Shown here piece by piece: positions 22,371 to 45,650 of a stretch of 64,000 nucleotides of DNA. This DNA comes from Takakia lepidozioides (taxonomy: Eukaryota; Plantae; Bryophyta). Under the pieces are notes generated by a model. It saw only the letters and a list, made by a program, of their open reading frames with translations, made no database searches and was not told the origin of the DNA. A program made the position numbers and the translations under genes. How positions within the stretch are numbered: position 1 is the first letter of the stretch; the number at the start of each line of letters is the position of its first letter. The stretch is from contig CM060731.1 of the NCBI GenBank assembly GCA_030704615.1, positions 56,668,001-56,732,000 on the forward strand, in the 5' to 3' direction.

Positions 22371-22539
22371 CTATGTTAGGAACCTAGTATTCCAAACCAT
22401 AAGCCGCATCAGGTTCTCTACTCGGTTACCTTGTGGAAAGGGGGTTAGAGACATGTTCATGACCGGTTGAGTGTCAGTTTGTCAACACGGAGGTGCCACT
22501 AGTTGCTGGGAAAAGTGCCGGTACGAGCACTAGCGATAC

Positions 22540-25160
22540 TAGCGGTTATGCGAGACGAGGTGTGCGGTTTAGGCCACCTTCACCTCCTGTGTCTTCTACG
22601 GAAGGTTCTGATTCGGATTGTGAATAAGGAAGACTCACACCGGCGGTGCAAGTTGTTTCCTTGCCATTGCTGTGTGACACAGTGGAGGAGATGTATGGAG
22701 CCACCAAGGGGCCACGAAGGTACTTTGGGGCGGTGGGCACCATTGAGTTGGATGATTTTATCCAAGAGTTTAGTTGGTGTGACTTGCAGCAAATGCGCAA
22801 TCCACAACTGTTTACGCCTTTCATGGCATGGAAGGGGCTGTTTCAGCACCTTGAGGGGCCGCCCATGGACAATTACCATGAGTTTAGGCGGGGGCACGAT
22901 GTTGAGATCGAGGAGTGGAGGATGTACTGGTCACCCGACTATGTCTCCATCACTAGAGGCACTAGAGGCACAAGGGCAGCAGCCACACCGGCAGTTGCAC
23001 CAGCAGCAGCACCCACAACAACAACTTCCACGAGCAGTAGTAGGACTAGTGGTACAGCAACTACGACGGCCACCCAAGCTACTTCTGCACCAGCACCAGT
23101 GGCGGTGCCTACCTTCAACCCTGTTGTGGAGTTCTTCGAAGAGTTGAGAAGGAACTACCAAGGGGTGAGGACAGAGAAGTTGAGGAGCTTGCAAGAGTTC
23201 TAGAGGAAGCCTACTGAGAGCTTGAGGGAGGCTTTCACTGGCATGAGGCGCTTGATAAATGTAACCCAAGGGGTTACGGAGGCTCAGGCAGTCCAGTTCT
23301 GGTACGAGATATTGGACAATGAGCTGAGGAGAAGGGTGCGGGATGCAACTCTCCTACAAGCGGCCCAACCCACCTTAGCAAATGTGTTTTTGCTGGCAGA
23401 GCGGATAGAGCTCAACATAGTGGAGGAACGAGTGGTCATGGTGGGATTTGCTAAGGAGGCACCACGGGGTAGTGGTGCTCCTAGCCAGCCACTACCTTAA
23501 CGGGCTCAAGGCAGCAAGGGAGCTCAGGTGAAGCCCAGGGAAGAACAGAGAGGACCTGAGATGCAGGGGTCTCTCCCTTCATTTGTAAGCCAACAACGGG
23601 CGGATGTGGTGTGCTGGACATGTGGAGGACCCCATGTCAAGAAGGATTTCCCAGAGGGAGGCAATGGTTTGGCACCGACACAGCCTGCACAGTTGCAGTG
23701 TGGGCATTGCGGCAGGTACGGGCATAGAGAGGCTTAGTGCTATGGTTTGCACCCTGAGTTGCGCCAGGCCAGTTCCAAGGGAACAATGGTGGCCGGGGGC
23801 GAGGTGGAGCAGCCAGAGAGGACGAGGTGGCCACGCACGAGGTGCAGGCCAAGGGCAAGCTCAACATGGCCAAGGACGCGGAGGTCAGGGTGGTGACCAA
23901 GGCATGGCCAACCGGCTTCAGCAGCTAGAGCAGAGGCTCGCTGCCATGGCCATAGCTCAGGTGGTACCGGCTCGAAGGCCAGATGGTCCACCTCCTCCTC
24001 CTGAAGGAGGAGACATGGGAGGCATGGGATTCATGTGCAGGGCAGCACTACCACTAGTGTAGGGTACACCCTACCACTTGGGTGGGGCACCCACTACCAC
24101 TAGGGGTGCGACTACCACTACCACTGTGGGTGGGGCACCACTACCACTAGTGCCGAGCAGCACTACCACTACCACTATGTGCGGGGCAGGACTATCACTA
24201 GTGCAAGTGGAGTCAGCTGCGGCAATGACTCGAGGAGCAGCACGAGTTCCTGAGCCACGGGGTGCGGAGGTGGAGTTGGATCCACAGCGTGGGGAGGCAA
24301 GCCGTCAGGCCAGGCTTCTTCAGTCATTCACATTGGCGGAGATAGTGTCGACTCCGTCCATGGCACCTAGTTCTCGCCCGACTGTTACCAAGGCGGAGGT
24401 TACTATGCCATTGGGGAGAGCTACACGGGCAGCACCAATACCTAGTGTTGCCAAGGCTACGGCAGCTAGTGTGCTGCTGGGGGCGGCCACAGCTGTGTGC
24501 CAGGCTCCATTGTTCTCGGCTACCATGATTGCGACGCCGGGGATAAGACCAGCTGAGGTGTTCAGGCTGGCAGCGACACTCTGTGAGAGTGGGGAGGTTA
24601 CTTCATCTTCTGCGGGAGATAGTGGGAGGTGTAGTGCCGGAGGGATCCTCGGATGTGAGGGTCAAGACTGCCCCGGCGGCGCCATGGCAAGCTGCAGCTG
24701 CCAGGTTGATGGAGTTGTCAGCTAGGCCAGCCATTGAGCGCGCCATGGTGACACCTGGAGTTGTCATATTAGACAACCAGGATGGCATTTTCTGTTTGAG
24801 TGGACCGGCAGGCAAGAGGTACCGGCCATTGCGGGTCTTGTTGGACTCGGGAGCTCAGCCATTGATGCTGGGCAGAGCTGCTATTGCAGGCTTGGGCCCA
24901 CGGAGGCGGATATGGAGTCGTGCCCTTTCCAGATACAGACATCGCTGGAGATCAGCAGCAGCTCGAGGCATGACACACGGCGTGAGTTGGCTATCAGACT
25001 ACAGCTGGATCATCCTAAGATGGCTCAGTGATGAGAGCCAAGGCCATTGTGACAGACGCGGTCTCGTACGATGTCCTTGTTGGTGGGACAGTATTGTACC
25101 CCATGGGCTTCACCCTGGATTTTTGGGAGGAGTCAGCTTCCTATAGGCCTGGATGGCAGT
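22540..25160 (+). pseudogene. gag (with zinc knuckles) and aspartic protease of the Ty3/gypsy element
   Basis: ELDDFIQEF..W, LRSLQEF*R..ESLREAF, CWTCGGPH, CGHCGRYGHREA*C, RVLLDSGAQPLMLG. Several stops and frameshifts. Confidence 0.85.
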
Positions 25161-25429
25161 GAGGGGAGGGCCAGTGTGTGCAGCTCCCTGTGACGTTCAT
25201 AGGAGGAGTTGCGGTTGCCCCAGCGAGGCAAGATGCCACACAGCATCATTCACAGCTGCAGTGACTTGGCCCTAGAGAGTTTGGGCAACGTTCATTCAGG
25301 ATATGTCACCTCCGGGGGAGCAGGATGACATGTATATGGCGGAGTTGCCTGCCATGGTTGCTCAAACTTCATTGTGGGGCTCGAGCAAGGATTTGCAGCA
25401 TATTGCTGATTGTCGTGTGGACCATTGGA

Positions 25430-26400
25430 CACCACACCAATAGTGTGGCAGTGTCCGGATGAAGGCATCTGCCTTCTGGACTTGTTTGGCGGGATCAGCA
25501 CCGGATTGGCTGTTGTTCTACAGGCAGGTGTACGAGTACGGCGTTACTTGTATGTGGAGAGGGATGAGACTGCACGACGCGTCTCCCTCCGTCATGTTGC
25601 TCAGTTGGTGCAGCAGTACCCTGAGTTGTTGCTGGTATCTGCGGTTCGTGGATATCAGCAGGCCTTGCCAGCAGACATCTCTTTGCGGGGGGCGCAAGAT
25701 TTGGAGCGGGTTGGCTCCATTGATTTGGTAGTGGCAGGTTGGCTCTGCCAAGGGCATTCATCAGCCGGGCATGACAATGGATTGCGAGACTCGAGGTCGG
25801 GTCTGTTTTGGAGATGGTGCGGGTTTTGCGCCACTTACACAGCTTTCATCAAGCTGTATCTCCAGCATACATCTTGGAGAATGTGCCACTGATGGGCAAT
25901 TCTCGGGCCAGGGTGATGGCCAGTGTGCATCAAGTCCGGTCGTGGCTTGGGTCAGCAGTGTTGCTGGATGCAGCTACAGTGGGGTCACGGGTTCATCGTC
26001 CACGGTTATGGTGGACTAACTTGATGCCACCCGCACTGCTTAAGCGTGCATTTGATGGGGTGCAGCGGCCAGCACACCTCACAGTGGATAGCATTTTGGA
26101 CACATGGAGGCAGTCTCAGCGTGTGAGACACGATGACCGTTCGCCTTTGGCAGTGGTCAACAAGGTGGGTCGACCACGAGCAGCACTACCTACACTGCTC
26201 AGCTTCCTAGAATCGCATGCTTTCCGGGATAGCGGACCTGACCTCCTGTGGGATGCTCAGTTGTAGCAGTTAGTGGAGCCTAATGCTGACGAGCGAGAGC
26301 GGGCTATGGGTTTTTCCACTGGGACCACGGCGGTGCCTTCTCTTTCTGAGGCATCACGTCGTCAGGTGTTGGGGCAAGCGATGGATCTTGACCTGGATTA
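25430..26400 (+). pseudogene. DNMT3-like C5-cytosine methyltransferase domain inside the retrotransposon polyprotein
   Basis: Motif I LLDLFGGISTG, II YVERD, IV DLVVAGWLCQGHS (PC changed to LC), GLRDSRSGLFW, VI ILENV, VIII HRPRLWWTN, IX/X ERERAMGF..RRQVLGQAMD. Frameshift ~25810 and stop at 26264. Confidence 0.92.
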
Positions 26401-26949
26401 TCAGCTTGGCTATGGCTGAGCAACGTAGAGTGCGGAGTGCACTTCCCTTGACGGTCTCTCTGCCTACCGAGACGGTACAGGCAGTGAGTGGGGGCGAGCC
26501 GGTGAGGACCACGGGATGTAGACATCCATGGCACACGTGGGAGGTGCTCGAGGTTCAGAGGGAGTTGGCAGCCAAGGCGACTGTGATGGATGAGGTTGGG
26601 GATTCTTCTCGGGTTGAGGAGGTCCTCAAGGATCAGATGATGGGGCAGGATGAGGCCTTGTCATTGACTGAGCAGGCAGGGAGTACTGCTCAAGAGGTTG
26701 CGGCATAGCAACCACGGGAGTCATCTACCTCTAAGTCTGCTGGACTTAAGGTTACAGTTACGAAGGGCAATTGGGAGCCTGACATTGGACCTATTGTCAC
26801 TAGAGGAGAGAGACGACGTATACGGCAGATCCTGAGGTTTACAGGAATTGCTTTGCCTCTCGTGCTACGGTGAAGGAGCATGAGAGACATGTTCAGGTTG
26901 TGCATCGACTGGGTTTGGTCAACAGGGATGCGGATGGATTCCAAGACTG

Positions 26950-27405
26950 CAGTGGAACAGCAAGCACACAAGAGGGCTCCCTGGAACTGTAAACATTCCC
27001 CAACTTTGAGTACTCTATTGACAACCTACCATAGAAAAGCTGATATCTTTGATGGGGGTTTGATCCACACTAAGCCCCAAAAACATTTCCAGTTCTCATC
27101 GCTGAAGTTGTACAACCCCCATTTTTTTTACATGGGTTGGGTGACTGACTGAGCCTTTTTTGGTTGTATATGCAAAGAAGGGTTCTAGGGAATTGTTGAA
27201 TTTCCACAACCATTTGGAGGGGTCAATTTCCAATTCTGCAAGCGGCCTGCCCATAATCCATACAAAGGAGTTGGTTGCTAGCCATGCCCTAGTGGTAATA
27301 GTGAGGGGAGGCTGGGGATTCATTCCCTTATCTGTGGCTGTCCAACAGCAGACACGGACTGGAGTGAGAGGCATAGTTCGAATTGTCAAGGGTTCTGTAG
27401 AGGTA
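26950..27405 (-). mobile_element. Probable L1-type LINE ORF2 C-terminal fragment
   Basis: Trp-rich open frame (..RAWLATNSFVWIMGRPLAEL..KWLWK) between two unrelated elements. No diagnostic motif seen. Confidence 0.4.
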
Positions 27406-28964
27406 ACATTCATGATAGAAATTTGAGGACTCTTGCAGAGAAGGAGCCTCCCGCTCAGGATACACCGGGTAAAGGTAGAAAGGCAAAGGGAAAGGATGTT
27501 GCTGGTGGTGTGGGGAAAGGAAGGGGTAGGGAGAAGGGGGCACAAGGGTAGGTAGGTGGGCAGGGAAGTGTTGCAGATACTGGCCCTCTGGTGGATGTCC
27601 AGCAGACTCAACCGCATGGTAGGGATCCGGGAGAAAGACAAGGGGATGGTTGATCCCAAGGACCCGTACCATGCAGTGGAGCATCCCACGAGGGTCATTC
27701 GCCCTACCAGCTTGGAGATGGCCAACGTCGGGTTCCTTGCCATGATGGAGTCCAAGAAATCTGATTACAAGGGCGAACCATCACCAGTGTGGGAGAGGAT
27801 TGTGGAGTTCCTCGGCATGGTGCGTGTTGTCTTTTGCTTCTTGTCTGTTGTGGGCATGGATCGTTTCAATCCTTCTGAGCATTCCATTGTATGCTTGTTT
27901 GCAGGCTAAAATGACCAAATCCTGGGTCAACGGAAAGGAGAAGCCATATGCAGCCGAACTCATCATCTTGGATATCTCTGATGGGTTGCCAGTCCCGGAT
28001 GTCCTTCCATCGGGTGCTTGTCCAGGTTGAAATGCTTTTGATGAGCGCTACTGGCAGTGGATTTTCTCCTTTTGCAATTTCTTTCTGTCCGATGCAGGTG
28101 TTTTTGGTGCTCATCCAGTCCATCGACCTTCGCTGTCGCCGTGCACTTGCCAGCTATTTGAAAGCCTCTAGTATGAGGGTCGTGAAGACATGGAATTGTG
28201 TTAACAGCATGTACCTGATAAAGGGGGATCGTCCCGGAGAGATGGTAAATCTGCCTTCTTATTCCTCTTCTTGGTGGTTCTCGGATGGAGTTGCATAAGT
28301 CACTCAAATGAATATGTAGGGGCCTGGTTTTCAAGCTTCTTAGTTCTTTGTGTATGTCATGTTCGTAGACTCGTTTGTTTGAAGTTGTTTGTCTCATCCG
28401 AGTGCATCCACCTACGACTCCAGCCGTCATTAGGGAGTTTGCCATCACTCATGGGGGCAAGTTCATAGACGAGAGGACAGATCCTCCCACGGATGACATG
28501 CACCACAACTACGTGGACAACAACGTGTGCTTGCGAAGGGGGAATGGGGTTCCTTGGAGAGGGGCCAGGGAGAGGAGCCCGGCTTTCATTCAGACGATTG
28601 TGGAGTGCTGCACCTACACAAACGCCAGAGTTCTGGATTTGTCAATGGGCACAGGTTTGTCTCTTGAACATTCACATTTCATGAGGTTTGTTTGAGCTTG
28701 CACTTTCAGCTCTTCCCACCATTCCAAATGTGTCTTCAATGTCTGTTTCCTTCATTGTATTCCACTGCAGGTGCCTCGTACCACGCTTGCAAGGCCAGTG
28801 CGCGACATCTCTTTGGGATTGAAGGGGATGCCGAGATTTACAAGAACCTCCTGATGGGTTTGGGTGGATACACTTCTCAAGTCCTTCCGAAGCCCCTACC
28901 CGCTGATATTGATACAGGGGAGACTTCCAACAAGGAGCTGGACTCCGACTTTGCCTGTGAGTAA
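27406..28964 (+). pseudogene. Beta-class N4C/N6A methyltransferase-like domain, partial copy (4 exons)
   Basis: ELIILDISDG, TGA in place of W at 28028, RERSPAFIQTIVECCT..VLDLSMGTG|ASYHACKASARHLFGIEGD. Confidence 0.75.
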
Positions 28965-30068
28965 GTTCAACCTGTGGATGCTTGCATTGTTGTTTCAATA
29001 CCCAGAATCACTGTTCTTAAGGCGAAGTGCACATGGGAGACATCCTCGTCGTTGGACTTGTGCATTGCATCATTGTGTTCAAAATGGTTTTTTGTCGACT
29101 TGTGCAGGAGTCCGCGTGCTTCCACTGACCCTCCAGGGCTATCACACTTTTTTGGACTTTTTTCAAGTCCTCCTCAGTCTTACGTGCTACCTCTCTATGC
29201 GGAGGCACTCGCAGCAAACATGTCCGTTCATGGCACTCACAGTCCAACAATCGACGGCCGTGGTAGAAGACGTGGTGTTGGGGTCGGAATCTTTGTGGAT
29301 GACATAGCATAAGAGGTCGATACTGATTCTGATGACTGTGACACTTGATATGAAGTTTTCTTTTTGCTTTTATTCGGGGCCAATTTGGAAATGGGATGGT
29401 TGTGTGTCCATGTTGTCCTGTTTGCAATGTGTGCGTGGGATGCAAATTCATGGGAACAGACTATCGTTGGAGATGGGGGTTGCATGGATTGCCCGGATTG
29501 TTCCTTCAATCTATTTAGTGTTTTGCAAAGCTCACAGGCTTGTTAGCATTGCAAAAACAAACAAACATCTTTGGTTCGGGTAGAGCATTCTCGCATCATT
29601 TGCTCGTTGGTCTCCAAACCATTCCTGCTAGAAGAATGCTTGGTAAATCCATCACGTTAAAGTCCACGTGATCAAAGATCGTTCAGGCATTCTCAATTCT
29701 GGTGAGCATCCATGATGCTCCCGCATATACTTGGCATGTTCGCAAGGGTGGTGAGTAAGAAAAGATTTCGCAGGGATCCGCTTTGGATGATGTGAGTGTG
29801 CACCTGCTCACGACGTAGCCACATTCCAATGCAGGGGCTTAGTATGTTTATAACGTCTAAATGGATGCAATGGATAGTAAGGATGGATACAATGGATATA
29901 ACACAACCAGTCTGCATTCCCTGCAAATGGCTGATCAACCCGCGGTAATAGGGGACACCCGCAGAAATAGGCCATGTATGCATGCTGACGTGGCGTGAGC
30001 CTGTGCTGGGCTCACGGTTTCTTGGGCTCACAGGCTCACGCCTCCGGGCTCACGGAATAGCACCCCCT
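27406..30068. repeat. Second, partial copy of 36192-38827: 3' half of the ParB-MTase gene (+) and 3' end of the convergent gene (-)
   Basis: Colinear similarity from GAAATTTGAGGACTCTTGCAGAGAAGG to GGGCTCAC.GAATAGCACCCCC. Confidence 0.95.
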
Positions 30069-30399: not shown

Positions 30400-30729
30400 A
30401 TATCCACGTGACACGTGGCTCGTTGTGGCATGTGTGCATGATAACGTCGTCCCTACACCTGTCATCAGACACGTAGCAGTCCGGGGAGAGTCGTGTGTTG
30501 CTAGAAATCAGTCACGTACGTGACCAAAAACACGGTCATGTATCTTGCTCACTAGGGGATGTCACCCAGAGTCATATTCATGACGCGGATATTAGAGTCA
30601 TCGTAACGACACGGTCTACATGATTCTTTGGAAAAGAGGAAAAGAGTAAAAAATGAGTCGAAATGATAAAAAAAAAGTCATGAAAACAGTAAAAAAAAAA
30701 TGTTATGAAACCCGTTTTTTGTACTAGTG
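30070..30729 (+). mobile_element. One end of a CACTA (En/Spm) transposon with subterminal repeats and an A35 run (30364-30398)
   Basis: Ends CCCGTTTTTTGTACTAGTG, reverse complement CACTAGTACAAAAAACGGG. Clustered GTCAC/GTGAC/CATGAC/GTCAT motifs at 30400-30710. Partner end not found. Confidence 0.75.
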
Positions 30730-30960
30730 GTATGATCCTTCATCACCACAACATAGGGTCGGCACTGGAGTTGTCATTGGTGTGCCTGGCAAAGACACAT
30801 ATCACAGTCTAGTTATTTCTAAAGGCATGTACCGTGTTGAGGTCGAGTATGTCCATGTTTCACATTGTCGCTTGCCTCATCCTAATGAGGAAGACAACCC
30901 ACCGCAAACTGAGTTGGACCACGTCCTCAGTAGGTCCAACACCTTGGCCAGAGAAGTACC
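30730..30960 (+). pseudogene. C-terminal fragment of a CACTA ORF2 (TnpA/Tnp1-En/Spm-like) protein
   Basis: VGTGVVIGVPGKDTYHSLVISKGMYRVEVEYVHVSHCRLPHPNEED..ELDHVL..WP matches the G..H...G..RV.V...LP.P...L...WP pattern of this domain. Confidence 0.6.
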
Positions 30961-31691
30961 TGAGGAGGGGTTAGAAGTAGGGTTCGCCCGGGCATAAACA
31001 TTGTTGGCAGTGAGGAAAAGGCAGGAAAGTACTTCATAGCTTTTAGCATGCTTGCGGAGACATAGTGTAGATGTAGTATGTCACCCTTTATCATGGCTGG
31101 ATTTTGTTGACTCTGTTCCAGCACTTTCTCTCTTGGATTCTATTCTGTTTTTTGAATGGTGAATCTTTAAGAGTGTTTGGGTATGCATATTCGCTTGAAA
31201 TGTATGGGAATTGTATGAGAATGTATGAATCACTTACACACCACTCTGTTAGTGGTATATGTAAGACTGTCACAGTAGGCAAGAGTGGTTGTACTCCTCC
31301 AGATGCAGCCCTAACCACTTATATACCACTAGATGGCAGTAATAATTCCAATACATGGTCCCTACAGACGCAGTGGATGACCCAGTGAGTGGTTCTAACA
31401 CACAAGTACATGCAACGTATGCACATATTTTCTGGCACTTTATTTCTTGAATAATACAAAGACGCCGAAATGGATGAATTCCGTTCGCACACAATAACAA
31501 CACCCGCATCCAAATACGGTTGACAATGTCCTATTTTGATTTTGGTTACATGCAATAGCAACCCTTGTTGCAAACGTCAAACTGGAGAGCTCCAGAGGCA
31601 TCGTGGGGAGCCCTTGTTTTCCGCGAGGAGGAAGAGAAGGAAATCATTGTACTTCACGAACTCTAGAAACAGGAATAGAGCCAGATATAGA

Positions 31692-34600
31692 ATGAGGATG
31701 GAAAGAGTGGCCGAAGAGGAAAAGGCGGAAGAAGAGGGCAAAGACACAAGTTCGGCGATGGAAGAGCAGGAATCCGGGGAAGACCAGCAGCCTGCCATAG
31801 TTCCTAGAACAGATGAGGAGGACATTGCATCCGAGGGAGAGGCAGACGCCGAAGATGATGTTGACGCTGGCCTCACAAAGACCCTAATAGTGGAAGAGAG
31901 GATGGGGGAGATGCTCCAGAACACGAGAGGCGTGGAGAGCAGTCCGAAGCGCAAAGGGTCCCCGGCGATTGGGGAGTCTTCTGGAGCAGCCCAAAAAAAG
32001 GTTCAATCTTTGGAACCCATCTTTGTGCTTCATTGCTGATGTGAACCCAAGTTGAGATTCCATGTCGATATGAACATAGACTGCACGAGGCATCTCTGCA
32101 GGTTGCATCAACCGTGAACAAGAAGCTCAAAAAGTGTAGCCAAAACGGCCAAATTGGGCACTCTTTGAGCACACCTTGTCTTTGTTTTTCCCCTGTGAAA
32201 TTCGGCAATACAGGGCAAGTCTTGGAGGTTCAATCATCAGTTGCATGGCAGCTCAAACAGTGTGCGTCAACGCACACTGTTTGAGCTGCCATGTCATTGC
32301 ACTTGTCATCTGAAAATTGGCCACATAGGGTTTGAATTAGTGGTTGAATCATCACTATCCTGGCAGCTCAAACAGTGCGTTGGCGCACACTGTTTGAGCT
32401 ACCCTTATCATTGCTTTTTTCATTTGAGAATGGGCCACATAGGGCATGTCTCTGAGGACAGATAAAAACTTATTTGGCAGCTCAAACAGTGTGCGTTGCC
32501 GCACACTGTTTGAGCACACCTTCTCTTTGTTTTTCCACTGTGAAATTCGGCAATACAGGGCAGGTCTCGAAGGTTCAATCATCAGTTGCATGGCAGCTCA
32601 AACAGTGTGCGTCAACGCACACTGTTTGAGCTGCCATGTCATTGCACTTGTCATCTGAAGATTGGCCACATAGGGTTCGAATTAGTGGTTGAATCACCAC
32701 TATCCTGGCAGCTCAAACAGTGTGCGTTGGCGCACACTGTTTGAGCTGCCCTTATCATTGCCTTTTTCATTTGAGAATGGGCCACATAGGGCATGTCTCT
32801 GAGGACAGATGAACACTTATCTGGCAGCTCAAACAGTGCGTTGCCGCACACTGTTTGAGCACACCTTCTCTTTTTTTTTCTGTGAAATTTGGCAATACAG
32901 GGCAGTCTCGGAGGTTCAATCATCAGTTGCATGGCAGCTCAAACAGTGTGCGTCAACGCACACTGTTTGAGCTGCCATGTCATTGCACTTGTCATCTGAA
33001 AATTGGCCACATAGGGTTTGAATTAGTGGTTGAATCATCACTATCCTGGCAACTCAAACAGTGTGCGTTGGCGCACACTGTTTCAGCTACCCTTATCATT
33101 GCTTTTTTTATTTGAGAATGGGCCACATAGGGCATCTCTGAGGACAGATAAAACTTATCTGGCAGCTCAAACAGTGTGCGTTGCCGCACACTGTTTGAGC
33201 ACACCTTCTCTTTGTTTTTCCACTGTGAAATTCGGCAATACAGGGCAGGTCTCGAAGGTTCAATCATCAGTTGCATGGCAGCTCAAACAGTGTGCATCAA
33301 CGCACACTGTTTGAGCTGCCATGTCATTGCACTTGTCATCTGAAAATTGGCCACATAGGGTTTGAATTAGTGGTTGAATCATCACTATCATGGCAGCTCA
33401 AACAGTGTGCCAACGCACACTGTTTGAGCTGCCCTTATCATTGCCTTTTTCAATTGAGAATGGGCCACATAGGGCATATGTCTCTGAGGACAGATGAACA
33501 CTTATCTGGCAGCTCAAACAGTGTGCGTTGCCGCACACTGTTTGAGCACACCTTCTCTTTGTTTTTCCACTGTGAAATTCGGCAATACAGGGCAGGTCTC
33601 GAAGGTTCAATCATCAGTTGCATGGCAGCTCAAACAGTGTGCTTCAACGCACACTGTTTGAGCTGCCATGTCATTGCACTTGTCATCTGAAAATTGGCCA
33701 CATAGGGTTCGAATTAGTGGTTGAATCATCACTATCCTGGCAGCTCAAACAGTGTGCGTTGGCGCACACTGTTTGAGCTGCCCTTATCATTGCCTTTTTC
33801 ATTTGAGAATGGGCCACATAGGGCATGTCTCTGAGGACCGATAAACACTTATCTGGCAGCTCAAACAGTGTTCTTTCAACACTTACGGTTGAATGAACAC
33901 TTACCTTGCACCTCAAACAGTGTGCGTCAACGCACACTGTTTGAGCTCACCTTTTCTACCACAGATGGCCTGTTTGCTATGCTCAAACACCCTCGTCTAA
34001 TGCCTCACTCTTATGTCAATTTGAATGGACAACCCTGCAGGAGAAGATGCAAGTGTGGCGGAGGAGATCCCTTCGGGACTGGGGAAGGATATCATTGTTG
34101 ATGTTGACGATGAGTTCTATGAAAGCAAAGCCGCTGAGATGCTGGGGGGTCAGAAGGTAAACTCTCAGCTTGTGGTGCAAAGTATGCTTGCCCCGGGTGG
34201 GAGGTTGAAGATTCCCCTGTGTAGGATGGTTTCCATGCCCGTCGTTCGACCACCCCTCATCAAGGACATTCTCAAGCTAGAGGCCGAGTTTGTTCATGGG
34301 TATTTGGATGGATCCGCAGTGTTTTACGTTTGTACAAAGGATTCCACAGGCAATGAGCTCCTTGTGGATGAGTCAATCGTGGACTCCTGGGATCCTATTT
34401 GGAGACAGGTGAACGAATCCTTCGAACTTCTTCTCTCCAGGAAACCTTCCACCCAGGCATTCTCGGGGAAGATGTTTTACGTTTGGGATGGGAACCACCG
34501 ATTGCTTGCATGGATGGCTGTTATTGGGAGGCTGCACTCACAGGAGGAAGAGTGGCATTACTCTGTTCGATCGATGGTGCTGGATTGTGAGGGGAACATG

Positions 34601-37600
34601 ATGGGTCTTCTGACGGCAATGAATGATGTGAACAGGTTGGTTTCTCATTCTACCTGTTCCACTTGCAGTTCCTTGGTTCTTTGATTAAAGTCCTTGAATT
34701 TCATTCTGACTTTCAGATATCATTCTGCAGAGAAACGGAGACATCGCATGTCAAAACGAGTCTGGTTCACACACTGTATAGGATACAAAGGATCGGGCAG
34801 ATGCCCTTGACCAACACTTTCAGCGGAGACGTACAAGAAGTGCGAAAGCTCCAAGACATCGGAAACGTGGTACTCGTTGACACGCGAGGCTTTCATGGAG
34901 TACATGTACACGGTGAGATACATCTTCCTTCATCTGCCCTTTCCATATTCCTGCTTCCACATGTTTGTTTCTGTTTGTTTCCCTTGCCCTTCGGTTCATG
35001 CAACTCTCGTGCATTCCCTTGCAGCAAGACATTGCAGATGCAGGGGAGCGTGGCAAACTGGAATACTACAGGTCAACCCCTGAGGAGAGAAGGACAGCAA
35101 AGGGGGTTGAGACTCACATCCAAAAAGAGATGACCGCTACAAGAAGGACTATAATGAGTGCTTTTGTGAAGCAGTTGAGAATTGCCGACCCATCATTCGG
35201 AGCGCAGTTTCTCTTGGAGATAAAAAACCATTATAACAAGCCAGGCAAGCCAGAGATGGCCCAGGAGAAGTTACACAGGTTGTCTACCGCCGTTGTGTCT
35301 TCAGAACAGAAGGTGAAGTGGCTACAGATATGGAACTCCGATCCCACAGTTAGGGATACACACATGTTCCCCAGGCCGGAGAAAGAGAAGAAGACCCAGC
35401 GTGTCATTCCAGTCAGTGACAATGTGCTGGACACATGGCTTCACAAGGCCACTTACTGGAGCCAGGTGTGATGTCCTTTCCTGTGTCACTTTCTTTTCTC
35501 TTTTCCTGTCCTTCTCTTTCCATTGCCTCTCACATTCGCTGTGATTTTTTTGGGTTCATTCTTGCATTTGAATTGTTTTGCAGTTGGAAGAAAGGGCACG
35601 GTCGGTTCTGCATACTCAGCTGGCTGACTATGGCATCACTATGACAGCACCGAAGGTCTCCTTCGAAGCATACATGAGGAAATGGAGAGCCACAGTGTGG
35701 CACTCTTGTTTCTTTAGAGAGTTCAGCAAGGAGGGTGGCATCAGTCGAACACATGACCTTGACCAGCAAAAAAAGAGGAAGCCTGGAAACGATGCCTTTA
35801 CAGGTGCACTCCCTGGGCAGTTCAGTTTACTTAGTGTCCTGTGGTTGCAATGTACTGTGACGCATACAGTTTAAGGGGAATGTGATGGAAAAACTGAGAG
35901 ACAATAATTGCATTGCATAATGAGGCTGTCTTTGTTCCTGCAGGTACATAAAGTTTGTTCTCATGGAAGAGAATTGTTTGGACAAACATCCAGATTTCGT
36001 GGACCTCTGGCTTGTCCCTGCTGGAAATCAGACTATGTTTACTACTGGGATCTTGCATGACTGGGGCCCAGACCATCTATCTTCTTGTGGTTGGTATTTG
36101 GATTGCCCTCCTTCTGAGACCCCAGCTCCGGAGGTGTCTTTGAGGAGAGAGAATGAGCGAATTGCAGCCACTGCCGCAGCAGCCGACCTCGACATTCATG
36201 AGCGAAATTTGAGGACTCTTGCAGAGAAGGAGCCTCCCGCTCAGGATACCCCGGGTAGAGGTAGAAAGGCAAAGGGGAAAGATGTTGCTGGTGTTGTGGG
36301 GAAAGGAAGGGTAGAGGGAAGGTGGCACAAGGGCAGGGAAGTGTTGCAGATATTGGCCCAGTGGTGCATGTCCAGCAAACTCCACCGCATGGTAGGGGAT
36401 CCGTGAGAAAGAACAAGGGGGTGGTTGATCCCAAGGACCCGTACCATGCAGTGGAACATCCGACAAGGGTCATTCGCCCTACCAGGTTGGAGATGGCCAA
36501 CGTCGGATTCCTTGCCATGATGGAGTCGAAGAAATCTGATTACAAGGGCGAGCCATCACAGTGTGGGAGAGGATTGTACAGTTCCTCGACACGGTGCGTG
36601 TTCTCTTTTGCATGTTCTCTGCAGTGGGCATGGATCGTTTCAATCCTCTTGAGTATTCCATTGTAATTTTGTTTGCAGGCTAAAATGACCAAATCCTGGG
36701 TGAACGGGAAGGAGAAGCAATATGCAGCCGAACTCATAATCTTGGACATCCCTGATGGGTTGGCAGTCCCGATGTCCCTCCATCGGGTGCTTGTCCGGGT
36801 TGGAATGCTTTTGATGAGCGCTACTGGCGGTGGGTTTTCTCCTTTTGCAATTTTTTCCTGTCCGATGCAGGTGTTTTGGTGCTCATACAGTCCGCCGACG
36901 TTCGCTGTCGCCGTGCACTTGCCAGCTATTTGAAAGCCTCGGGCATGAGAGTCCTGAAGACATGGAATTGTGTGAACAGCATGTACCTTACGAAGGGGGA
37001 TCGTCCGGGAGAGATGGTAAATTTACCTTCTTCTTCCTCTTCTTGGTGGTTCTCGGATGGAGTTGTATAGGTCGCTCGATCTCATATGTAGGGGCCTGAT
37101 TTTTTAAGCTTCTTAGTTCCTTCTGAATGTTTGTTCGCAGACTCGTTTGTTTGAAGCTGTTTGTCTCGTCCGAGTGCATCCACCAACGACTCCGGCCGGC
37201 ATTTCGGAGTTCGCCATCACTCATGGGGGCAAGTTCATAGACGACAGGACAGATCCTCAACGGATGACATGCACCACAACTACGTCGACAGCAACGTCTG
37301 CTTGCGAAGGGGGAATGGGGTTCCTTGGAGAGGGGCGAGGGAGTGGAGCCCGACTTTCATTCAAACGATTGTGGAGTGCTGCACCTACACAGACGCCAGA
37401 GTTCTGGATTTGTCAATGGGCACAGGTTCGTCTCTTCAACATTCGGATTTCATGAGGTTTGATTGAGCTTGCACTTTCAGTATTTCCCACCGTTTCCATA
37501 TGTGTCTTCAATGTCTGCTTCCTTCATTCTATTCCACGCAGGTGCTTCGTACCACGCTTGCAAGGCCAGTGCCCGACATCTCTTTGGGATTGAAGGGGAT

Positions 37601-37736
37601 GCTGAGATTTACAACAACCTCCTTATGGGTTTGGGTGGACACACTTCTCAAGTCCTTCCCGAAGCCCCGTCCCGCTGATATTGATACAGAGGAGACTTCC
37701 GACAAGGAGCTGGACTCCGACTTTGCCTGTGAGTAA
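31692..37736 (+). pseudogene. Multi-exon gene: acidic N-terminus + ParB/Srx-like domain + linker + beta-class amino (N4C/N6A) DNA methyltransferase fold; several frameshifts
   Basis: FYVWDGNHRLLAW at ~34475-34513; ELIILDIPDG..GWNAFDERYWRWVFSFCNFFLSDAGVF; WSPTFIQTIVECCT..RVLDLSMGTG|ASYHACKASARHLFGIEGDAEIY. GT-AG introns at e.g. 34636-34730, 35466-35583, 37426-37541. Linking the 31692 exon to the rest is inferred. Confidence 0.75.
32165..33950. repeat. Higher-order tandem array: ~5 x 345-bp units, each of three ~115-bp monomers carrying a 40-50-bp palindrome
   Basis: Unit starts (GAGCACACC) at 32167, 32512, 32857, 33197, 33544. Core GGCAGCTCAAACAGTGTGCG-NNNN-CGCACACTGTTTGAGCTGCC. Confidence 0.98.
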
Positions 37737-37766
37737 GTTCAACCTGTGCATGCTTGCATTGTTGTT

Positions 37767-40700
37767 TCAATATCGAGAATCACTCTTCTTGAGGCAAAGT
37801 TCACATGGCAGACATCCTCTTCGTTGGACTTGTGTATTGCATATTGTGTTCTGAATGGGTTTTTGTCGACATGTGCAGGAGTCCGCGTGCTTCCACTTGC
37901 CCTCCAGGGCTATCACACCTATTTGGACTTCTTTCCAGTCCCTCTCGGTCTTGCGTGCTACCTGTCTATGCGGAGGCACTCGCAACAAGCATGGCCGTTC
38001 ATGGCACTCGGAGTCCACCTATCCACGGCCGTGGTAGAAGACGTGGTGTTGGGGCCAGAATCTTTGTGGATGACATAGCACAGGAGGTCGAGACTGATTC
38101 TGATGACTGTGACACTTGATATGAAGTTTTCTTTTCGTTTTATTCGGGGCCAAATTTGAAATAGGATGGTTGTGTGTCCTTGTTGTCCTGTTTGCAATGT
38201 GTGCGTGGAATGCACATTAATGGGAACAAACTATTGTTGGAGATGGGGGTTGCATGGACTGCCCGGATTGTTCCTTCAATCTATTTAGTGTTCTCTGGAC
38301 CTCACGGACTTGAGTGCATTGCAAATACAAACAAACGACTTTGGTTCGTGTAGAGCATTCTCGCATCAGTTGCTCGTTGGTCTCCAAACCATTCCTGCTA
38401 GAAGAATGGTTGGTGAATCCATCACGGTGAAGTCCACCTCATCAAAGAGCTGTGAGGCATTCTCAAATCTAATGAGCATCCATGATGTTCCCGCACATAC
38501 CTGGCATGTTCGCAAGGGTGGTGAGTAAGAAAAGATTTCGCAGGGTTCCGCTTTAGATCATGTCAGTGTGCACCTCCTAACGACGTACCCACATAAACTT
38601 CTGAGGGCTTGGTATGTTGATAACGTCTGCATGGATGCAATGGATACAATGGATGTAACATATCCACTCTGCATTCCCGGAAAATGGCTGATCAACCCGT
38701 GGAAATAGGTGACACCCGCGGAAATAGGCCCTGTATGTATGCTGACGTGGCGTGAGCCTGTGCTGGGCTCACGGTTTCCTGGGCTCACAGGCTCACGCCT
38801 CCGGGCTCACAGAATAGCACCCCCCGTCTGGTGGACAGCTGGCTGGGTGTTCGGATCTCCATGGATTTGGGAAACATCAAGAACATGTATGGAAGACCCA
38901 CCGGCAATTGCTTCCTCAGACTCTTCTGTAAGATCTATGATACGGGTTTGCGTTCCCAGATTAAGTTCGGTCATCACGTAAGACTCATCTATGGCTTTCG
39001 CCACTGAGCGCACGAAAACGGGACTAACCTGGAAGGTCATAGAAGGCAGGCCACGGGGAGCTAGATAAGAATGCTTTACCGGTGACCTGATGACGTCGTC
39101 AGTGAATGTGCCTGGGGGAAAAGTGGACTCGGTCAAAACACTCATACTGGCAGATCCTAAAACATGTTGTTGGGAACTCAGCAGAAATTCGTCCACAGGG
39201 TCCCGGTGAGGCCAGTGCATCCGAGACTGTTGCACAATCCAGGGAACAGACTGGCTGTTAGTCTCCTGGATAGTCTGCTCGGCCATCTGCTGAGTGAGTT
39301 CGCCAGTGTGCTGCACAGTCTGCTGAGGGGCAATCTGCTGGCTGGATTCGTCGGTCTGATGCACGGTCTGCTGTACAGTTTGCTGAGGGGCAGTCTGGTG
39401 GCCATGTTCGCTGGTCTGCTGCACAGTCGGCTGAGGGGCAGTCTGTTGGCCGGTCTGTTCTCCGGTCTGCTGCAAAGTCTGCAAAGTTCGCTGCCTGCTC
39501 AGTACTGTTTGCACATACTGAGTATGTGTGTGCGGGGCAGTCTGCTGGGAGTGATCCGGCCTATTACCCGGGATGGTCTGGTGCACATGCTCGGTCTCTA
39601 GCACTTGGGCAGTCTACCCACATGTGTCGCGGGGAATATGTTGTTCGACATTCTTGTGGCCAGTCTGTTGGACAGTCTCCCGAACTCTTTGTAAAGCCAG
39701 GACAAGGTCCCTTGCACCTCTGGCAAAAGAGTCGAAAGCAGCCTGCACTTGCTTGTCTCCCAGATCAACTCGCCCTGCGACACATGTTTATGCAAATGTG
39801 AACTTGTAAAAAAGTTGGCAAAAGAAATTGAGCTGAAACACGAAAGTTGCCCATAACATTTTACCTTCCAAGAGATTTCCGACGAGGCCAATGTCCTTGA
39901 TTTGCCGGCACAGGCATGCTCCATCGAGATGAGCAATGGCGCCGATGCGGTCTTCAGTTGGGATCCCACACCACAGGACTTTGAAGACATTGGGATTCTG
40001 CAAAACAATGTCAAATACTGCTCGCTCCATCACCAATGCAAACCAGTGCAATGCATCATCCACTACAAACTTCTGTGAATGGTCTGTTCCATGGAGTAAG
40101 TCCATCCTCAAACTATGCAGATCCTTCATCAACTTGTTGTATGAGCGGAAATTGCCAAATTGCATCCATCTGTGTTGTAGGAAGGAAGCTGCCATGCGCT
40201 CAAAGTCCTCCTCAGTCAATCCGAACAAGTGCTTTCTTGCACCCCAAAGGTTGGATGTGCCATAGGCATATGTCTGAGGTCTTCAGGCCGTGGGTCATCC
40301 ATGAGAATCAGCTGCACAAGTAGTGGCGGCGCATTTTGGTCGTTTGTGGCTTCAATGGCAACAGCAGAGGCGGCTTCTAGAACATGGTTGGCTTCCTCAA
40401 TAGAAAACTCCATGGAATAATGAAAGGGTACAAATGACCACCGGCGGTCCGCAACAATCCGGTGGAGCTCATTATGCCACTCCAAATGGGGATTAATTTC
40501 TCCCACCCTAAGCCGGGGAAGTGTGAGGTCTTCAGCTCCGGGTCGAATTACCGGTGATGGCGATCGCCAAACTGCAAAAACCGCCATGCTATGTGAGAGA
40601 AAGGCAGTCTGCTGGTCCGCAGTCTGTTGGATGACAGGACTTCCCATTGGCATGGGCTGCATGATGGGCTCCTGGAGAGGAGTCTGCAGGATGACAGGCT

Positions 40701-41890
40701 GCTCGTTGGGAGTCTGCTCCGTTGGAGTCTGCTGGATGACGGCCTGCTGAATAGGAGTCTGCTGGATGGCAGACTCGGCTGTCCCAGACGCATTCCCCCC
40801 CGACGCGTCTTGAATATGTAATGCCGCTATAGCAGCAGATGACCCAGGATACTTCAATAATATGTACTCTCGCACGCGGTCCACTTCCGCACGCACTGCA
40901 GTCGCTTGTAAAGGAGCATCATTGCTAGGTATCCGCCAAGCCTGAATGGCCCTACGAATAGAAACACGTTCATCCTGGTACACGGCAGAGAACTTTGACG
41001 TCAGGAACATGGACGTGGACTCTATATTCACCTCATGCAGCGGACTGGACTCACAGACCAGCAGACTGTAACGTGCGTACGTAGGGTGGAGACAACTAGT
41101 AGACTATACCAGTGGACTGGACCAGCGGACTGACAAACGGACTCAGTAAGTAATGCAGCGATATAAAACAGACTAACTGACGAGCGGAGTGAGCCAGCGG
41201 ACTGACCAGACTGAATAGGCAACGTGACCCCGATGATGAACTCAAACAGCACAGAGAACAGACTGGGCGGTCAGATTGACCATTACCTCCTCTACTTCAT
41301 CATCGTCATCTTCATTTTCAAAGTTGTTCAACCAGTTCTGTTCCGCCTGTCGGATGAATGTGCGTAGCAGACCTGACTGGGCAATTCTGTAGAAATAACA
41401 AGAAGTCTGGATCCCCAATTGGTGGGCACTCTGGTGGGAAAAGCCCAAAGTCAACGAGGCGCAATGTGCCAGGGCAGACTGGCCCTTCAGTGCTCTGTTG
41501 AGTTTTTGGTTTTGACCCTAAACCGATGGCATGGGTCGCAATATTTGTGTGAGTCTATTGCCGAGTCTGGTCAGGCAAGTCAATGTCCACTGGACTTGTC
41601 ATCCCTTCCAGGCCCTGAGCAGATTCACTTTCAGTATCAGTACTGATGGTGTGGGTCTGCCGCCCAGGACGGGGTTCAGTCTGTTGCGTGGATTTTGCCC
41701 TTGCCTCGCGAGCAGACCTTGCAGCCTTCTCCTTTTTTTTTCTCCTTTTTTTGGGCCCCATCACTCAGTTTACGTTTTCTGGGAGCGTCCGGCGTTCCCT
41801 GCACTTGCAAATCCTCCATTGATGGGCCACCACAATGGACGCCATACCGTGCGCGCACTTCGTCTAATTCCAAAGTGCGGGGGTCAAGCA
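37767..41890 (-). pseudogene. Long degenerate gene of unknown function, convergent with the ParB-MTase gene; Gln/Thr-rich repeats and Cys/His-rich C-terminus
   Basis: Chain of same-strand ORFs (41676-41909, 40216-41031, 39788-40228, 38807-39604, 37767-38018) linked by frameshifts. The 3' part is conserved in the second copy (29017-30031). Confidence 0.55.
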
Positions 41891-41914
41891 TTGATCCGCG
41901 CAAACGCATTGTGG

Positions 41915-42966
41915 TCCCTTTCTGTGGTGCTATAGTTCTTTTCTGCTGCTGTCAACAATCTGCTTGCATAATAGATTGGTGAATCTATTGTGCCTGTCAC
42001 ATTCTGAGCTAGAACCGCTCCCAAAGCAATGCCTGATGCATCACTGTGTACATGAAATGGTAAATCCCATCTTGGATTTATGAGAATTGGTGCTGATGTG
42101 AGTGCCCTTTTTAGTGAATCAAATGATTCCTGGCAAGCTGGAGACCATCGATATTCGGCATCTTGCTTCAGCAGTCTATAGATTGGTGCCGCTCTGTGAG
42201 TATATTTGTCTATGTACCTTTTGTAATAGCTCGTCTGTCCCAGAAATCTCTTGAGTTTCTTGGGATTTTCTGGTGGTGGTATTTTCTGGATAACCTCCAC
42301 TTTTTTTGGATCTACCAGAATTCCCTGTTGGCACACAATGTGTCCCAATAATAATCCTGAATTCACACACAATGTACATTTTTCCGGGTTGAGACTTACT
42401 CCATTGTTTCTGCAGGCTTGTAAGCAAAGTTTTAAATGTGCCAAATGTTTGGATTTTTGTCCAAAGACACTGAAATCATCCAAAAATACCTGCATAAAAT
42501 CATTGAGATAGTTCTTGAATATCTCAAATACTGCTCGTTGAAATGTGGCTGGTGCATTGCAAAGTCCAAATGGCATGACTTTGTAAGCATATGCTCTCCA
42601 TTCAGTGATGAATGCGGTCTTTTCTCGGTCTTCTTTTGCCATCTGTACTTGGTTGTACCCACTAAACCCATCCATGAATGAGTACATTTCATGTCCAGCC
42701 ACTGTGTCTAACACTATTTCAGTGAAAGGTAGTGGAAAAGGGTCTTTCTTGGTTCCTGCGTTTAACTTGCGGTAGTCCACACACACTCGTAGTTTTCCAT
42801 TTTTCTTGGGTACTATCACAATGGGCGATAACCATTGTGGTGTCTCTACTGGGTATATGAATCCTGCATCCAGTAATTTCTTGATTTCTTCCCAAACTTT
42901 AGCTGCATAGTTGGGGTTCATTCTGTAACGGTTCTGACGAATTGGTTGTGTCAACTTCCAATTCAA
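41915..42966 (-). mobile_element. Ty3/gypsy reverse transcriptase and start of RNase H, truncated at both ends
   Basis: WLSPIVIVPKKNGKLRVCVDYRKLN, MDGFSGYNQ, MPFGLCNAPATFQR, VFLDDF, HSDASGIALGAVL, NYSTTER. Confidence 0.97.
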
Positions 42967-42969
42967 TTC

Positions 42970-44220
42970 GGTGCTGACTTGGGGGCAGTGGCAACATTAG
43001 TTACAGGGGCTGAAGCACCCTTGAGTGCCCAAGGCACTCAAGGAGGCGGAGGCGCTCACTAGGTGGAGCCCCGCACACTGGGTTGCGGTGGGGTTGGTTC
43101 CACAAGGGGTGGTGGTAGCTTAGTGGGACTTAGTGGGGTGGCATAGGACTCACCATGGGGCGGAGACCTTGTGGTGGGAGTCGTGGGGAGTCTTGGGACT
43201 CATCACGATCCAATGGGACCGTGGTGGGTGGGCCAAGACTCACCGCGACTCATCACAGGGAATCGAGGGTTTTTGTGGTGGTTCGCCATAAAATGGCATG
43301 GTTGTTTGTGAAACCCCCGCGGACAGTCACAGAAGTATATATAGGGAGTAGTAACCCCGAGAACGGTGCAAGCCCGTTGGTGACCAAAAACTAGTGAGCA
43401 AGCGTGCGAACCGGAAAGCGACCAAGGTGTGGGGAGCGATTCCGGACTGCCATCGACCAAAGGGAATTTCCACTTGGCCCAAATCGAGAGAGGGTCTTGT
43501 GGAGGAGTAAAGGGGGACCGTTATGTCCCGGTGAGCAGCCGAAGCTCCGAGTTGGCCCGGCGGCCAGTTTGAGAGTTAGGCGCGCGCATCAAGCGAGTAA
43601 CTATGGCTTGAAGAGGAGCTTACCGAAGTGAGGTGCGTGACACTTGGTATCAGAGCTTAGAGTTCAGTACGCGATCGTCCTTGGGATCGGCCTCATCATG
43701 GGGTCGGGCAAGCGAAAGCGGAAGCGGAACGGCCCGAAAGATGATGATCCTGGTGAGCCCGATGGGGGCGACGTGTCACCGAAGCGGCCATTTGAGGAAG
43801 CAATGCATGCCTTTGGAAGCGAGGCCGCTCAAGAACAGGGGGAATCTGAGGAGTCGGAGCCCGAGGAATTCCTGAGAGCTCCGGCAGACCAACAGATGCC
43901 TCCTATGCCAGCAGCTTTTTGGGAAGGGTTGTTAGCGTAGTTTGGTGGGACGTTGAAAGACGTGTTGAAGGCGGCTAATGCAACTTCCACTAAGACAAAG
44001 TTTAAGGTGAAGCCTAAGGAACCCGACCCCTTCGAGGGCGTCCGAAATCGGAATGCACTCAACACCTGGCTCTTCGAGCTAGAGCAATACTTCCGGGCGG
44101 CCAAGTTGAGTGACGAGGATTGGGTGGAAGTGGCTCCCACCTATTTGAGGGGCTATACTCAACAATGGTGGCAGAAACGCCTTCACGACCGAGGTCCAAA
44201 CCCGGAGACCTTGAAGGTAT
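42970..44220 (+). mobile_element. 5' part of a chromovirus-like Ty3/gypsy element: partial LTR (ends 43642), tRNA-iMet PBS (43645-43656), truncated gag
   Basis: GTGACA-CT-TGGTATCAGAGC; TATATATA ~43337; gag KPKEPDPFEG..LNTWLFELEQYF..YLRGYTQQWW with an in-frame TAG at 43938. Confidence 0.9.
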
Positions 44221-45650
44221 CCTAGCTTGAAAAGCAATAGATTGCCGACGATAACAAATGTTAATTGCATCAGCATAATCTAACGTCTCTTGAAATAGAA
44301 CAACATTTGAAGCGAATTTGGTTTTCACAGGGGTCTTCGGTTTGCGAGCAGGCAGACCTGCCTCGACACAAGCCCTATCCCATTCTTGCCTTCTTTTTCC
44401 CGACTTCTTCGTCCATGTGATCGTTTTCTGCGAGGTTGCATGTGCATCTTTTATGGAAACTTCCCTCATTAACTGACAGACTTTGTCCTCCGTGGTTGCA
44501 TACTGGCACACTTTGACATGACGTGACCAAAACAAGTGCCTGGAAAAGGCTTCACCAGTTGCAATGATTTACAAGTAACCACACTTGATAGAGCTGACTT
44601 TAGTATTCCCAAATTCGAACCCTCATCTTTGACATAGGCGATGACTTTATCAGTGAGCTGAAACTCAGCCAATAAGGGTTTCACGATCTCAGCCAAAGCA
44701 ACACCAGATGTACTCCTAGCCTCGAATAGGCCGATTGTGACATGCCTTGGAACCCAGTAGTCATCGATAAAGTTCACCACCATAGCAAACGTGTCAAACC
44801 CTGCTCGTGACATCCACAAATCAAAGGTAATACTAACCGTAGCAGCAGTAGATATTAATGGCAATCAAACTGATCCATTGTTTTAGCCAACATTGCTGGT
44901 ATGTATTCCTTCACGAGCTGCTTCATTGTTGGAAAAGCCACCTTCGCATCACACCGCAAGACCATTCTTCTCAACCAGGGACTCTCAACAACTGACAAAG
45001 CGATGCACCCTTTAGCGATCAACAAAACAAGCTCCTCAATGAAACGTTGTTGCTGCGGGTCGTTCTTGTTGTAGGGTTGCCACGCTCCAAAGAACTCTGT
45101 GATTGAGGATGGTGACACGTTTTTCCGTTTTCTTGCACTTCTGCCTACTTGATTCCACAGTTTCTTCTGTTTTGGACTGTAGCTCATATCGAATCATATC
45201 TGCATTATGTTCGTTCTGCAGACGCTTCTTCATGCTGGTAATTCCGTGAGAACATTATACTTAACGATACCCTTCCTGCAACGTGTAGTTTTGTGTGAAC
45301 TCTGGGAGGATGCAACAGGGTGACATATGATGCATCTCATGACTTGCGGCACTCTAACGTCTATTTTTGTATAATCACCTTCATTCAGAAATAAGAAAGC
45401 CCAAACAAGTGATCTCCGATGGTGTGGAACCCACAACTGCTGATTTGCGACAAGTGCAGCGTATCGAACACGCCATACTGCAAGTGCTTCGCCTGCAAAA
45501 GCACATCTACCTCATTCTCCGCTGGTTCTATTGTTATCCCTGCAGACTCTACAGACTCGCTCCTCCTCCCGGCCTCATTCTCTTCATGACCTATACATAG
45601 TGATACATCACCACTGACCCAATTATCTTCTGGCATGATTTGTCTCACTG
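44220..45650 (-). mobile_element. Degenerate hAT transposase (BED finger and N-terminal DDE region)
   Basis: SLVWAF..MRCIICH, ALSVVESPWLR, VSITFDLWMSRAG, VKDEGSN, CFGHVMSK, PVKTKFAS. Multiple frameshifts. Confidence 0.88.

Follow-up and report, generated by a model that had tools for sequence, protein, structure and literature searches.

A ParB/Srx-fold and methyltransferase-like accessory gene on a probable Mutator-like transposon of seed-free land plants, found as a decayed copy in Takakia lepidozioides

We analysed a stretch of 64,000 nucleotides from the bryophyte Takakia lepidozioides (contig CM060731.1, positions 56,668,001 to 56,732,000; hereafter the window). An earlier note on this DNA had proposed that an intron-containing gene, fusing a ParB-like part to a beta-class N4-cytosine/N6-adenine (N4C/N6A) methyltransferase (MTase), was spreading here as cargo of a plant DNA transposon, a CACTA end lying just upstream. 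Our findings are best explained by a Mutator-like DNA transposon present in many copies in seed-free land plants, of which the locus would be a decayed copy lacking its left part; the accessory gene of this transposon combines a predicted ParB/Srx-fold domain with a beta-class MTase-like domain. We give an even chance to the view that the protein is a self-recognition, anti-silencing factor comparable to VANC, in which the MTase-like domain would act as a module binding S-adenosylmethionine (SAM) and DNA rather than as a standard base methylase.

Relatives of the gene were sought exon by exon, each exon separately. The resulting model (Table 1) comprises 10 exons at 31692-38119 on the forward strand, with canonical GT..AG ends on its introns and an exon order common to the homologous loci L001, L003, L013 and L014. 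The start of the extent given earlier (31692-37736) was retained, while its end had to be moved to take in one further coding exon (37879-38119). Exon 1, which matched no homologue, is the least certain exon of the model. L001, L003 and a fern protein (P0130) all retain the added exon 10, which is under selection, with a ratio of nonsynonymous to synonymous substitution rates (dN/dS) of 0.31; in the window, L001 and P0130 it closes with an acidic FVDD.A.E motif, possibly a short motif for binding a host protein. All of the motifs quoted in the earlier note are found in the window: FYVWDGNHRLLAW at 34475-34513, ELIILDIPDG at 36730-36759, WNAFDERYW at 36801-36827, VLDLSMGTG at 37401-37427 and ASYHACKASARHLFGIEGD at 37544-37600, the MTase motif lying ~2.2 kb downstream of the first motif as described. 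Two of the quotations, RERSP and DISD, belong instead to a second copy at 27406-30067; the main copy reads REWSP and DIPD. The claim that both parts form one intron-containing plant gene on a DNA transposon held up, based on the shared exon order, on linkage to a transposase (see below) and on a fusion in Riccia, where a single annotated protein, the homologue P0159 (1207 aa), contains both domains; its matches to window exons 2, 4, 7 and 8 follow the exon order, albeit weakly for exons 7 and 8. Named relatives of the gene come from Riccia sorocarpa, Adiantum nelumboides and A. capillus-veneris.

Among representatives of 50%-identity clusters, 565 relatives of exon 2 were found at E<=1e-3, so that the gene cannot be put down to chance. 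In a Pfam search, the window exon pieces, including exon 2, matched neither ParB nor MTase families. An AlphaFold2 model built from a 71-row alignment reached a predicted local distance difference test score (pLDDT) of 92, compared with 36 for exon 2 as a single sequence, and the alignment-based model was used. For this model, the top 44 Foldseek rows were all ParB/Srx proteins (ParB, Noc, KorB, PadC, sulfiredoxin, SerK, SbnI or related), and an independent structural aligner placed ParB/Srx proteins in the top 12 of its 14 rows, with KorB and PadC scoring best (Z 7.5, root-mean-square deviation 2.7 over 89). The Atlas models matching exon 2 include DndB and ParB_N at a template modelling (TM) score of 0.50-0.54. 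Because these ranks agree, rather than on account of any single score, we assign the predicted structure of exon 2 to the ParB/Srx fold, confirming the ParB-like N-terminal part claimed earlier.

Exon 2 shares with members of the ParB/Srx superfamily (ParB, KorB, PadC and Noc; the DndB/SspE DGQxR clade; DUF3723) the fold, the position of the arginine-patch box and the terminal Asn, but differs from them in a ~30-residue insertion and in having no Pfam ParB_N match. The box reads DGNHRLxA/W, which is DndB-like, and we take it to resemble that of the DndB/SspE branch; the arginine patch of ParB CTPase clamps is GxxRxxA. Among the 71 family members, none gave a ParB_N Pfam match and 2 gave a weak match to DndB. 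Language-model features place exon 2 closest, among named families, to fungal DUF3723. As a lead only, the region at 34127-34633 has as its neighbours fungal DUF3723 proteins, whose gene is a conserved part of the cargo of Starship transposons (bioRxiv 10.1101/2021.12.13.472469) and which may contain a ParB-like domain. A match to ribosomal protein eL24 (E 0.003), obtained in a PDB profile search with the ParB alignment, was dismissed as spurious given the predicted fold. The ParB tree is unrooted with a poorly resolved base, and for this reason neither the ancestral state of the MTase aromatic residue discussed below nor any donor can be read from it.

The MTase assignment was made through homologues, with which the window exon pieces, too short for Pfam, can be aligned. 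The C-terminus of P0159 matches PF01555 (E 5e-5, short of the gathering cut-off), PHROG families of phage DNA MTases (E 2e-7 to 9e-7) and N6_N4_Mtase clusters (Atlas score 0.95), and motifs X and I align with phage enzymes at 97% probability (hhalign), identity to the phage enzymes being only ~20%. Motif IV precedes motifs X and I, as in beta-class N4C/N6A MTases, and the family shares motif order, the D-x-P register and, with a degenerate motif I, the SAM-site motifs with beta-class enzymes including the phage DLPY/DIPY/DPPY enzymes, CcrM, DpnA, DN4MT1 and N4CMT. At the level of sequence, these findings identify exons 7-9 as encoding a beta-class N4C/N6A-MTase-like domain, in line with the homology and motif order described earlier.

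The earlier note had also regarded the DPPY motif as altered. The catalytic loop is indeed changed, albeit not as supposed. The D-h-P-x of the family aligns on phage DLPY, DIPY and DPPY, indicating that I or L at position 2 is ordinary and that the real change is the loss of the aromatic residue at position 4. Across the relatives surveyed, motif IV reads DIPD, DISD, DLPE, DVPE, DVPS, DLPT/DMPT/DLPS, DMPS, DFPI or, in one A. capillus-veneris copy, HLPT. The aromatic is kept solely in a fern clade with DVPF/DLPF (A. nelumboides P0114 and the similar P0190), outside of which the catalytic pattern [DNS]-P/h-P-[YFW] was not found. Marchantia DN4MT1 and bdelloid N4CMT, for which no ParB domain has been reported, carry (T)SPPY, whereas the window family has no aromatic at position 4 of motif IV; DN4MT1 itself has TSPPY, and ParB goes unmentioned in the DN4MT1 preprint. 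In N4CMT, the motif IV Tyr was modelled as stacking onto the target base (PMC10406627). Motif I reads D-L-S-M-G-T-G in the window, D-F-A-G-G-W-G in Riccia and D-L-T-A-S-T-G in L003, its FxGxG being degenerate, and the acidic residue of motif II is kept. Despite the lost aromatic, substitution patterns indicate that the MTase-like domain is under purifying selection: between L003 and L019, two copies of the DLPE type, dN/dS was 0.04 for the ParB domain, 0.10 for the middle region and 0.12 for the MTase-like domain (p 9e-20 for the latter), and it was 0.33 (p 3e-6) between the two window copies.

Relatives of the gene also point to the nature of the carrier. In five independent loci (L001, L006/L007, L010, L011 and L012), one of them from Riccia (L010), two from Adiantum (L011 and L012) and two metagenomic, the gene is paired head-to-head with a transposase of one single family; no transposase was seen in L004, though enough upstream DNA was available. 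The transposase motifs of these relatives (FD, FMAD (ADxA), CLFHW and NxAES-type) fit what we take to be the Mutator D-D-CxxH-E pattern. In Riccia, an 11.9-kb unit (L010, 2401-14307) with GG ends and a candidate 8-bp duplication, itself palindromic, encloses both genes. Nothing convincing in the way of target duplications was found in L001, L011 and L012. Several palindromes accompany the transposase and the ParB-MTase-like gene within the Riccia unit, whose protein is mis-named 'trimethylguanosine synthase' in UniRef. Both window copies stop at the same point (30067 and 38824-38825), L003 ends in a similar motif in its own form, and the right end of the element in the window is GGGGG when read on the reverse strand. 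Finally, ~9,200 contigs of one DNA run map onto 4.9 kb with widely varying identity, a sign of a high-copy family. A segment at 63080-63245 on the reverse strand resembles the subterminal right end of the element (34-nt match, 94%; GCTCAC-type repeats) and is probably the end of a related family.

Intron 1 contains an array of palindromes of ~45-50 nt with a TGCG-N4-CGCA core, phased ~115 bp apart. In L013, the closest relative (64% identity over exon 2, and the sister row in the ParB tree), the corresponding intron likewise contains several palindromes with this core, directly ahead of exon 2. Since this core matches in both place and sequence, the array belongs to the element. Distinct palindromes occur near the gene in each family, namely window/L013, L004/L007, L010 (Riccia) and L012 (A. 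capillus-veneris). We regard the intron-1 array as a candidate parS-like binding platform, and it could be bound in trans by the product of other copies.

As assembled, the main copy carries ~8 frame breaks (Table 1), in agreement with its earlier description as frameshifted, and judging from its reading frames it cannot make the protein; no in-frame stops were seen in its exon pieces. At 6 of the ~8 break places, contigs assembled from the organism's DNA runs preserve the reading frame, the remaining 2 having been set by comparison with the second copy and L003. Most of the breaks are changes of a single base within runs, and they may reflect either decay or, for some, assembly error. No RNA run contains the window copy. 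Each of two runs guessed to be RNA holds a contig of 2.7-2.9 kb that briefly matches exon 4 (35247-35285) and a shorter contig matching the DGNHR region (34460-34516). The flanks of the exon-4 match translate to similar residues, which hints, no more, at transcription of a diverged and possibly domesticated relative.

Based on these findings, we propose that intact members carry the transposase and the accessory gene head-to-head, and that the accessory protein would act as a dimer on the element's own palindromes in a parS-like manner (15 phased sites in intron 1 of the window copy), binding them through its ParB domain and middle region. Nucleotide-dependent spreading from the palindromes is possible. 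Cognate copies bound in this way would be kept open or unsilenced, as with VANC. The MTase-like domain may still bind SAM and DNA; lacking the base-stacking aromatic, it would most likely serve as a DNA-binding, dimerisation or shielding module, or act on a non-standard substrate, with ordinary writing of N4-methylcytosine (4mC) or N6-methyladenine (6mA) being less likely. Several observations weigh against this proposal or the assignments beneath it. Each Foldseek match of exon 2 was weak (E>=0.08), and the structural scores were modest. The window holds neither a transposase nor a left end of the element, and the carrier is therefore deduced from relatives. The transposase itself gave no match to a Mutator-like element (MULE) family in Pfam, such that the Mutator assignment rests on knowledge of its motifs. 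At the threshold used, no array was found in L001, L011 and L014. Likewise, no spliced joint of the ParB-MTase family was found in the RNA runs.

The main rival to a SAM- and DNA-binding module is an active DNA amino-methyltransferase, directed to the palindromes by its ParB domain and marking the element as self with 4mC or 6mA, or through a change to an already modified base such as 5-methylcytosine, by means of a remodelled active site. Retention of the motif IV Asp and Pro, the motif I Asp/Gly and the motif II acid would suit such an enzyme, as would the dN/dS of 0.12, the DVPF/DLPF of the fern clade and the use of beta-class 4mC enzymes by Marchantia and rotifers, and the same proposal has been made for Ectocarpus Sola1-1. 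We nonetheless consider it unlikely, given that most lineages carry D, E, S, T or I at position 4 of motif IV (with HLPT in one A. capillus-veneris copy) and that FxGxG is degenerate. Moreover, the Trp downstream of motif IV occurs also in phage enzymes that keep their Tyr, and is thus no evident replacement for the lost aromatic. A protein with no role in silencing was also considered, namely a structural transposition factor whose ParB clamp, loaded on the arrays, would bridge or compact a long element to pair its short, weak terminal repeats, or would retain excised intermediates. Such a role would be in keeping with the large size and short ends of these elements (11.9 kb in Riccia), the constant transposase linkage, the ParB/DGQHR-type fold and the nearest language-model neighbours, which are DUF3723 proteins of giant Starship transposons. 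It leaves the conserved MTase-like domain unexplained, however, and the array in the window copy sits in an intron of the gene, away from the ends; we judge it distinctly unlikely.

Two further explanations dispense with an accessory function or with the Mutator carrier. Were the gene a host gene captured as passive cargo, in the manner of Pack-MULEs, and the array an unrelated satellite derived from a miniature inverted-repeat transposable element, one could account for its location inside a nest of transposon fragments, for the possible transcription of a diverged relative and for the absence of the array at some loci. This is very improbable in view of how strongly purifying selection has acted between copies of the element, of the transposase partner common to liverwort, fern and metagenomic loci, and of the array core kept in position and sequence in L013. 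The CACTA carrier favoured by the earlier note fares worse still, and we regard it as far-fetched. A real CACTA end and a TnpA-like open reading frame (ORF) piece do lie 0.7 kb upstream on the same strand, and algal relatives of the ParB-modifier design ride on EnSpm/Plavaka elements. Yet the CACTA end faces away from the gene, with its body on the far side, and the TnpA-like piece has no Pfam match. Both window copies close in a C-run rather than TAGTG, L003 does likewise in its own form, and a Mutator-type transposase accompanies every relative with enough upstream DNA except L004.

Comparable designs are known from other lineages. The Ectocarpus element Sola1-1_Ec32 encodes a 1104-aa accessory protein with ParB-like and N4C/N6A MTase parts, proposed to bind and modify its own element (PMC12477816). 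It is likened to the window family by architecture, as in both a large DNA transposon encodes the transposase on one strand and the accessory protein on the other (PMC12477816). It differs in that it comes from a brown alga, is carried by Sola1 and is predicted to be catalytically competent, whereas the window family occurs in land plants and has a Mutator-type carrier, an aromatic-less motif IV and an intronic palindrome array. In Bostrychia, the accessory genes PAG2/PAG3 of Plavaka elements include a ParB-like protein beside tandem inverted repeats, with a PF01555 methylase in the cassette, and such genes are also present on Chondrus Mutator elements (bioRxiv 10.1101/2025.02.11.637652). The Bostrychia genes are separate, ParB being joined to a 2-oxoglutarate oxygenase and the methylase to a SET domain, while the window family unites ParB and MTase-like domains in one protein. 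ParB-linked N6A MTases have further been listed in chlorophytes, chytrids and phage loci (Iyer et al., PMC4738411). VANC binds tandem motifs of the Arabidopsis VANDAL Mutator-like elements, its anti-silencing activity is proven, and this system, like the window family, combines a Mutator-type element with an accessory protein and family-specific tandem motifs in non-coding DNA (PMC5735166); according to a recent account, no other transposon system has been shown to bind its own sequence and modify it (bioRxiv 10.1101/2025.02.11.637652). The window family differs from it in having long palindromes as putative targets and an activity that is predicted. To our knowledge, no ParB or MTase domain has been described in VANC. 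We found no description in the literature of the ParB-plus-MTase design in land plants or on land-plant Mutator elements. The architecture is nevertheless less unusual than the earlier note implied, since ParB and N4C/N6A MTase accessory proteins as such are known from algal transposons. The ParB-plus-modifier transposon design is so far a prediction made from algae.

The nearest families indicate a prokaryotic ancestry for the gene, as far as sequence comparison goes. No relative was found in viral contigs or prokaryotic genomes, nor in phages by tblastn of window exon 8, and no donor was found, no dedicated donor test being made; the Riccia MTase domain gave only weak phage MTase matches when compared with phages, and the transposase gave no match to plasmids. 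No algal sequence was present among the relatives whose names were looked up. Contamination is ruled out by the canonical introns, the plant DYW-PPR-type and other host genes and the thousands of matching DNA contigs from the same organism, as the earlier note had expected.

The host genes, read by eye and including intact DYW-PPR-type genes, surround a transposon nest at ~20-47 kb of the window. Within it, 22400-26950 (forward strand) holds a decayed Ty3/gypsy-like element with pieces of a C5 DNA-methylase ORF at 25410-26266 (PF00145, E 2.7e-5), a second transposon-borne methyltransferase in the same nest. A satellite at 20617-21625 consists of ~22 copies of 45-bp units made from CACTAG-containing 12-mers. 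On the reverse strand of the right flank (38826-41400) are three ORFs (265, 146 and 271 aa) containing Q-rich repeats, two of which were scanned without an informative Pfam match; this flank is probably another repeat that received the insertion of the main copy. At 41884-45500 (reverse strand), a gypsy-type reverse transcriptase/RNase H fragment (PF00078, E 2e-28) occurs together with a fragment of a hAT-like transposase that matched DUF4371 weakly.

Table 1. Features of the main copy, the second copy and the adjoining CACTA end (positions in the window).
Feature	Position	Strand	Remarks
Exon 1 (probable)	31692-32000	+	Acidic, low-complexity N-terminus; ORF and GT donor
Intron-1 array	32159-33947		347-bp unit x5, three ~115-bp subunits each; 15 full palindromes and one half site
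Exon 2, predicted ParB/Srx-fold domain	34041-34635	+	VRP, DGNHR (34475-34513), terminal Asn; 1-nt break near 34050
Exon 3	34731-34912	+	11-nt deletion near 34815 in main copy
Exon 4, conserved middle region	35025-35465	+	Candidate DNA-recognition part
Exon 5	35584-35803	+	Frame break within A-run near 35770
Exon 6	35944-36593	+	5' part conserved, followed by low-complexity linker; breaks near 36312 and 36560
Exon 7, MTase-like strand 4	36679-37016	+	Motif IV DIPD (36730-36759), then PxWN; break near 36770
Exon 8	37141-37425	+	PWRG-x-RE, motif X, SAM-binding motif I VLDLSMGTG (intron-split); break near 37258
Exon 9	37542-37732	+	Rest of motif I, acidic motif II (FGIEGD); break near 37658
Exon 10	37879-38119	+	Conserved LPxY..A, FVDD.A.E acidic tail, stop codon
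Right end of element	38740-38825		GCTCAC repeats, then GAATAGCA and C-run; common to second copy
Second copy, 5'-truncated	27406-30067	+	Exon 6 to right end; 89.5% identical; motif IV DISD; premature stops and frameshifts
CACTA right end, facing away	30705-30729		Outside element as far as tested
TnpA-like fragment	30731-30994		Outside element as far as tested; likeness by eye

The window copy is itself broken and adds little beyond its unusually long array. The family to which it belongs, with its high copy number in liverworts and ferns, several diverged protein-palindrome pairs and a natural split in the motif IV aromatic, makes self-recognition testable in Marchantia or Physcomitrium, and the family could yield a eukaryotic ParB/parS-type clamp and a sequence-specific epigenome tool. 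A bolder reading, which we hold to be rather unlikely as it stands, is that the Mutator elements of land plants operate a ParB/parS clamp of bacterial type on their palindrome arrays and that the aromatic-less MTase domain carries out a novel reaction, or else recognises or protects methylated cytosine. If true, this would amount to a transposon-encoded, sequence-programmable epigenetic writer or shield, in which protein and palindrome have co-evolved family by family over several hundred million years.

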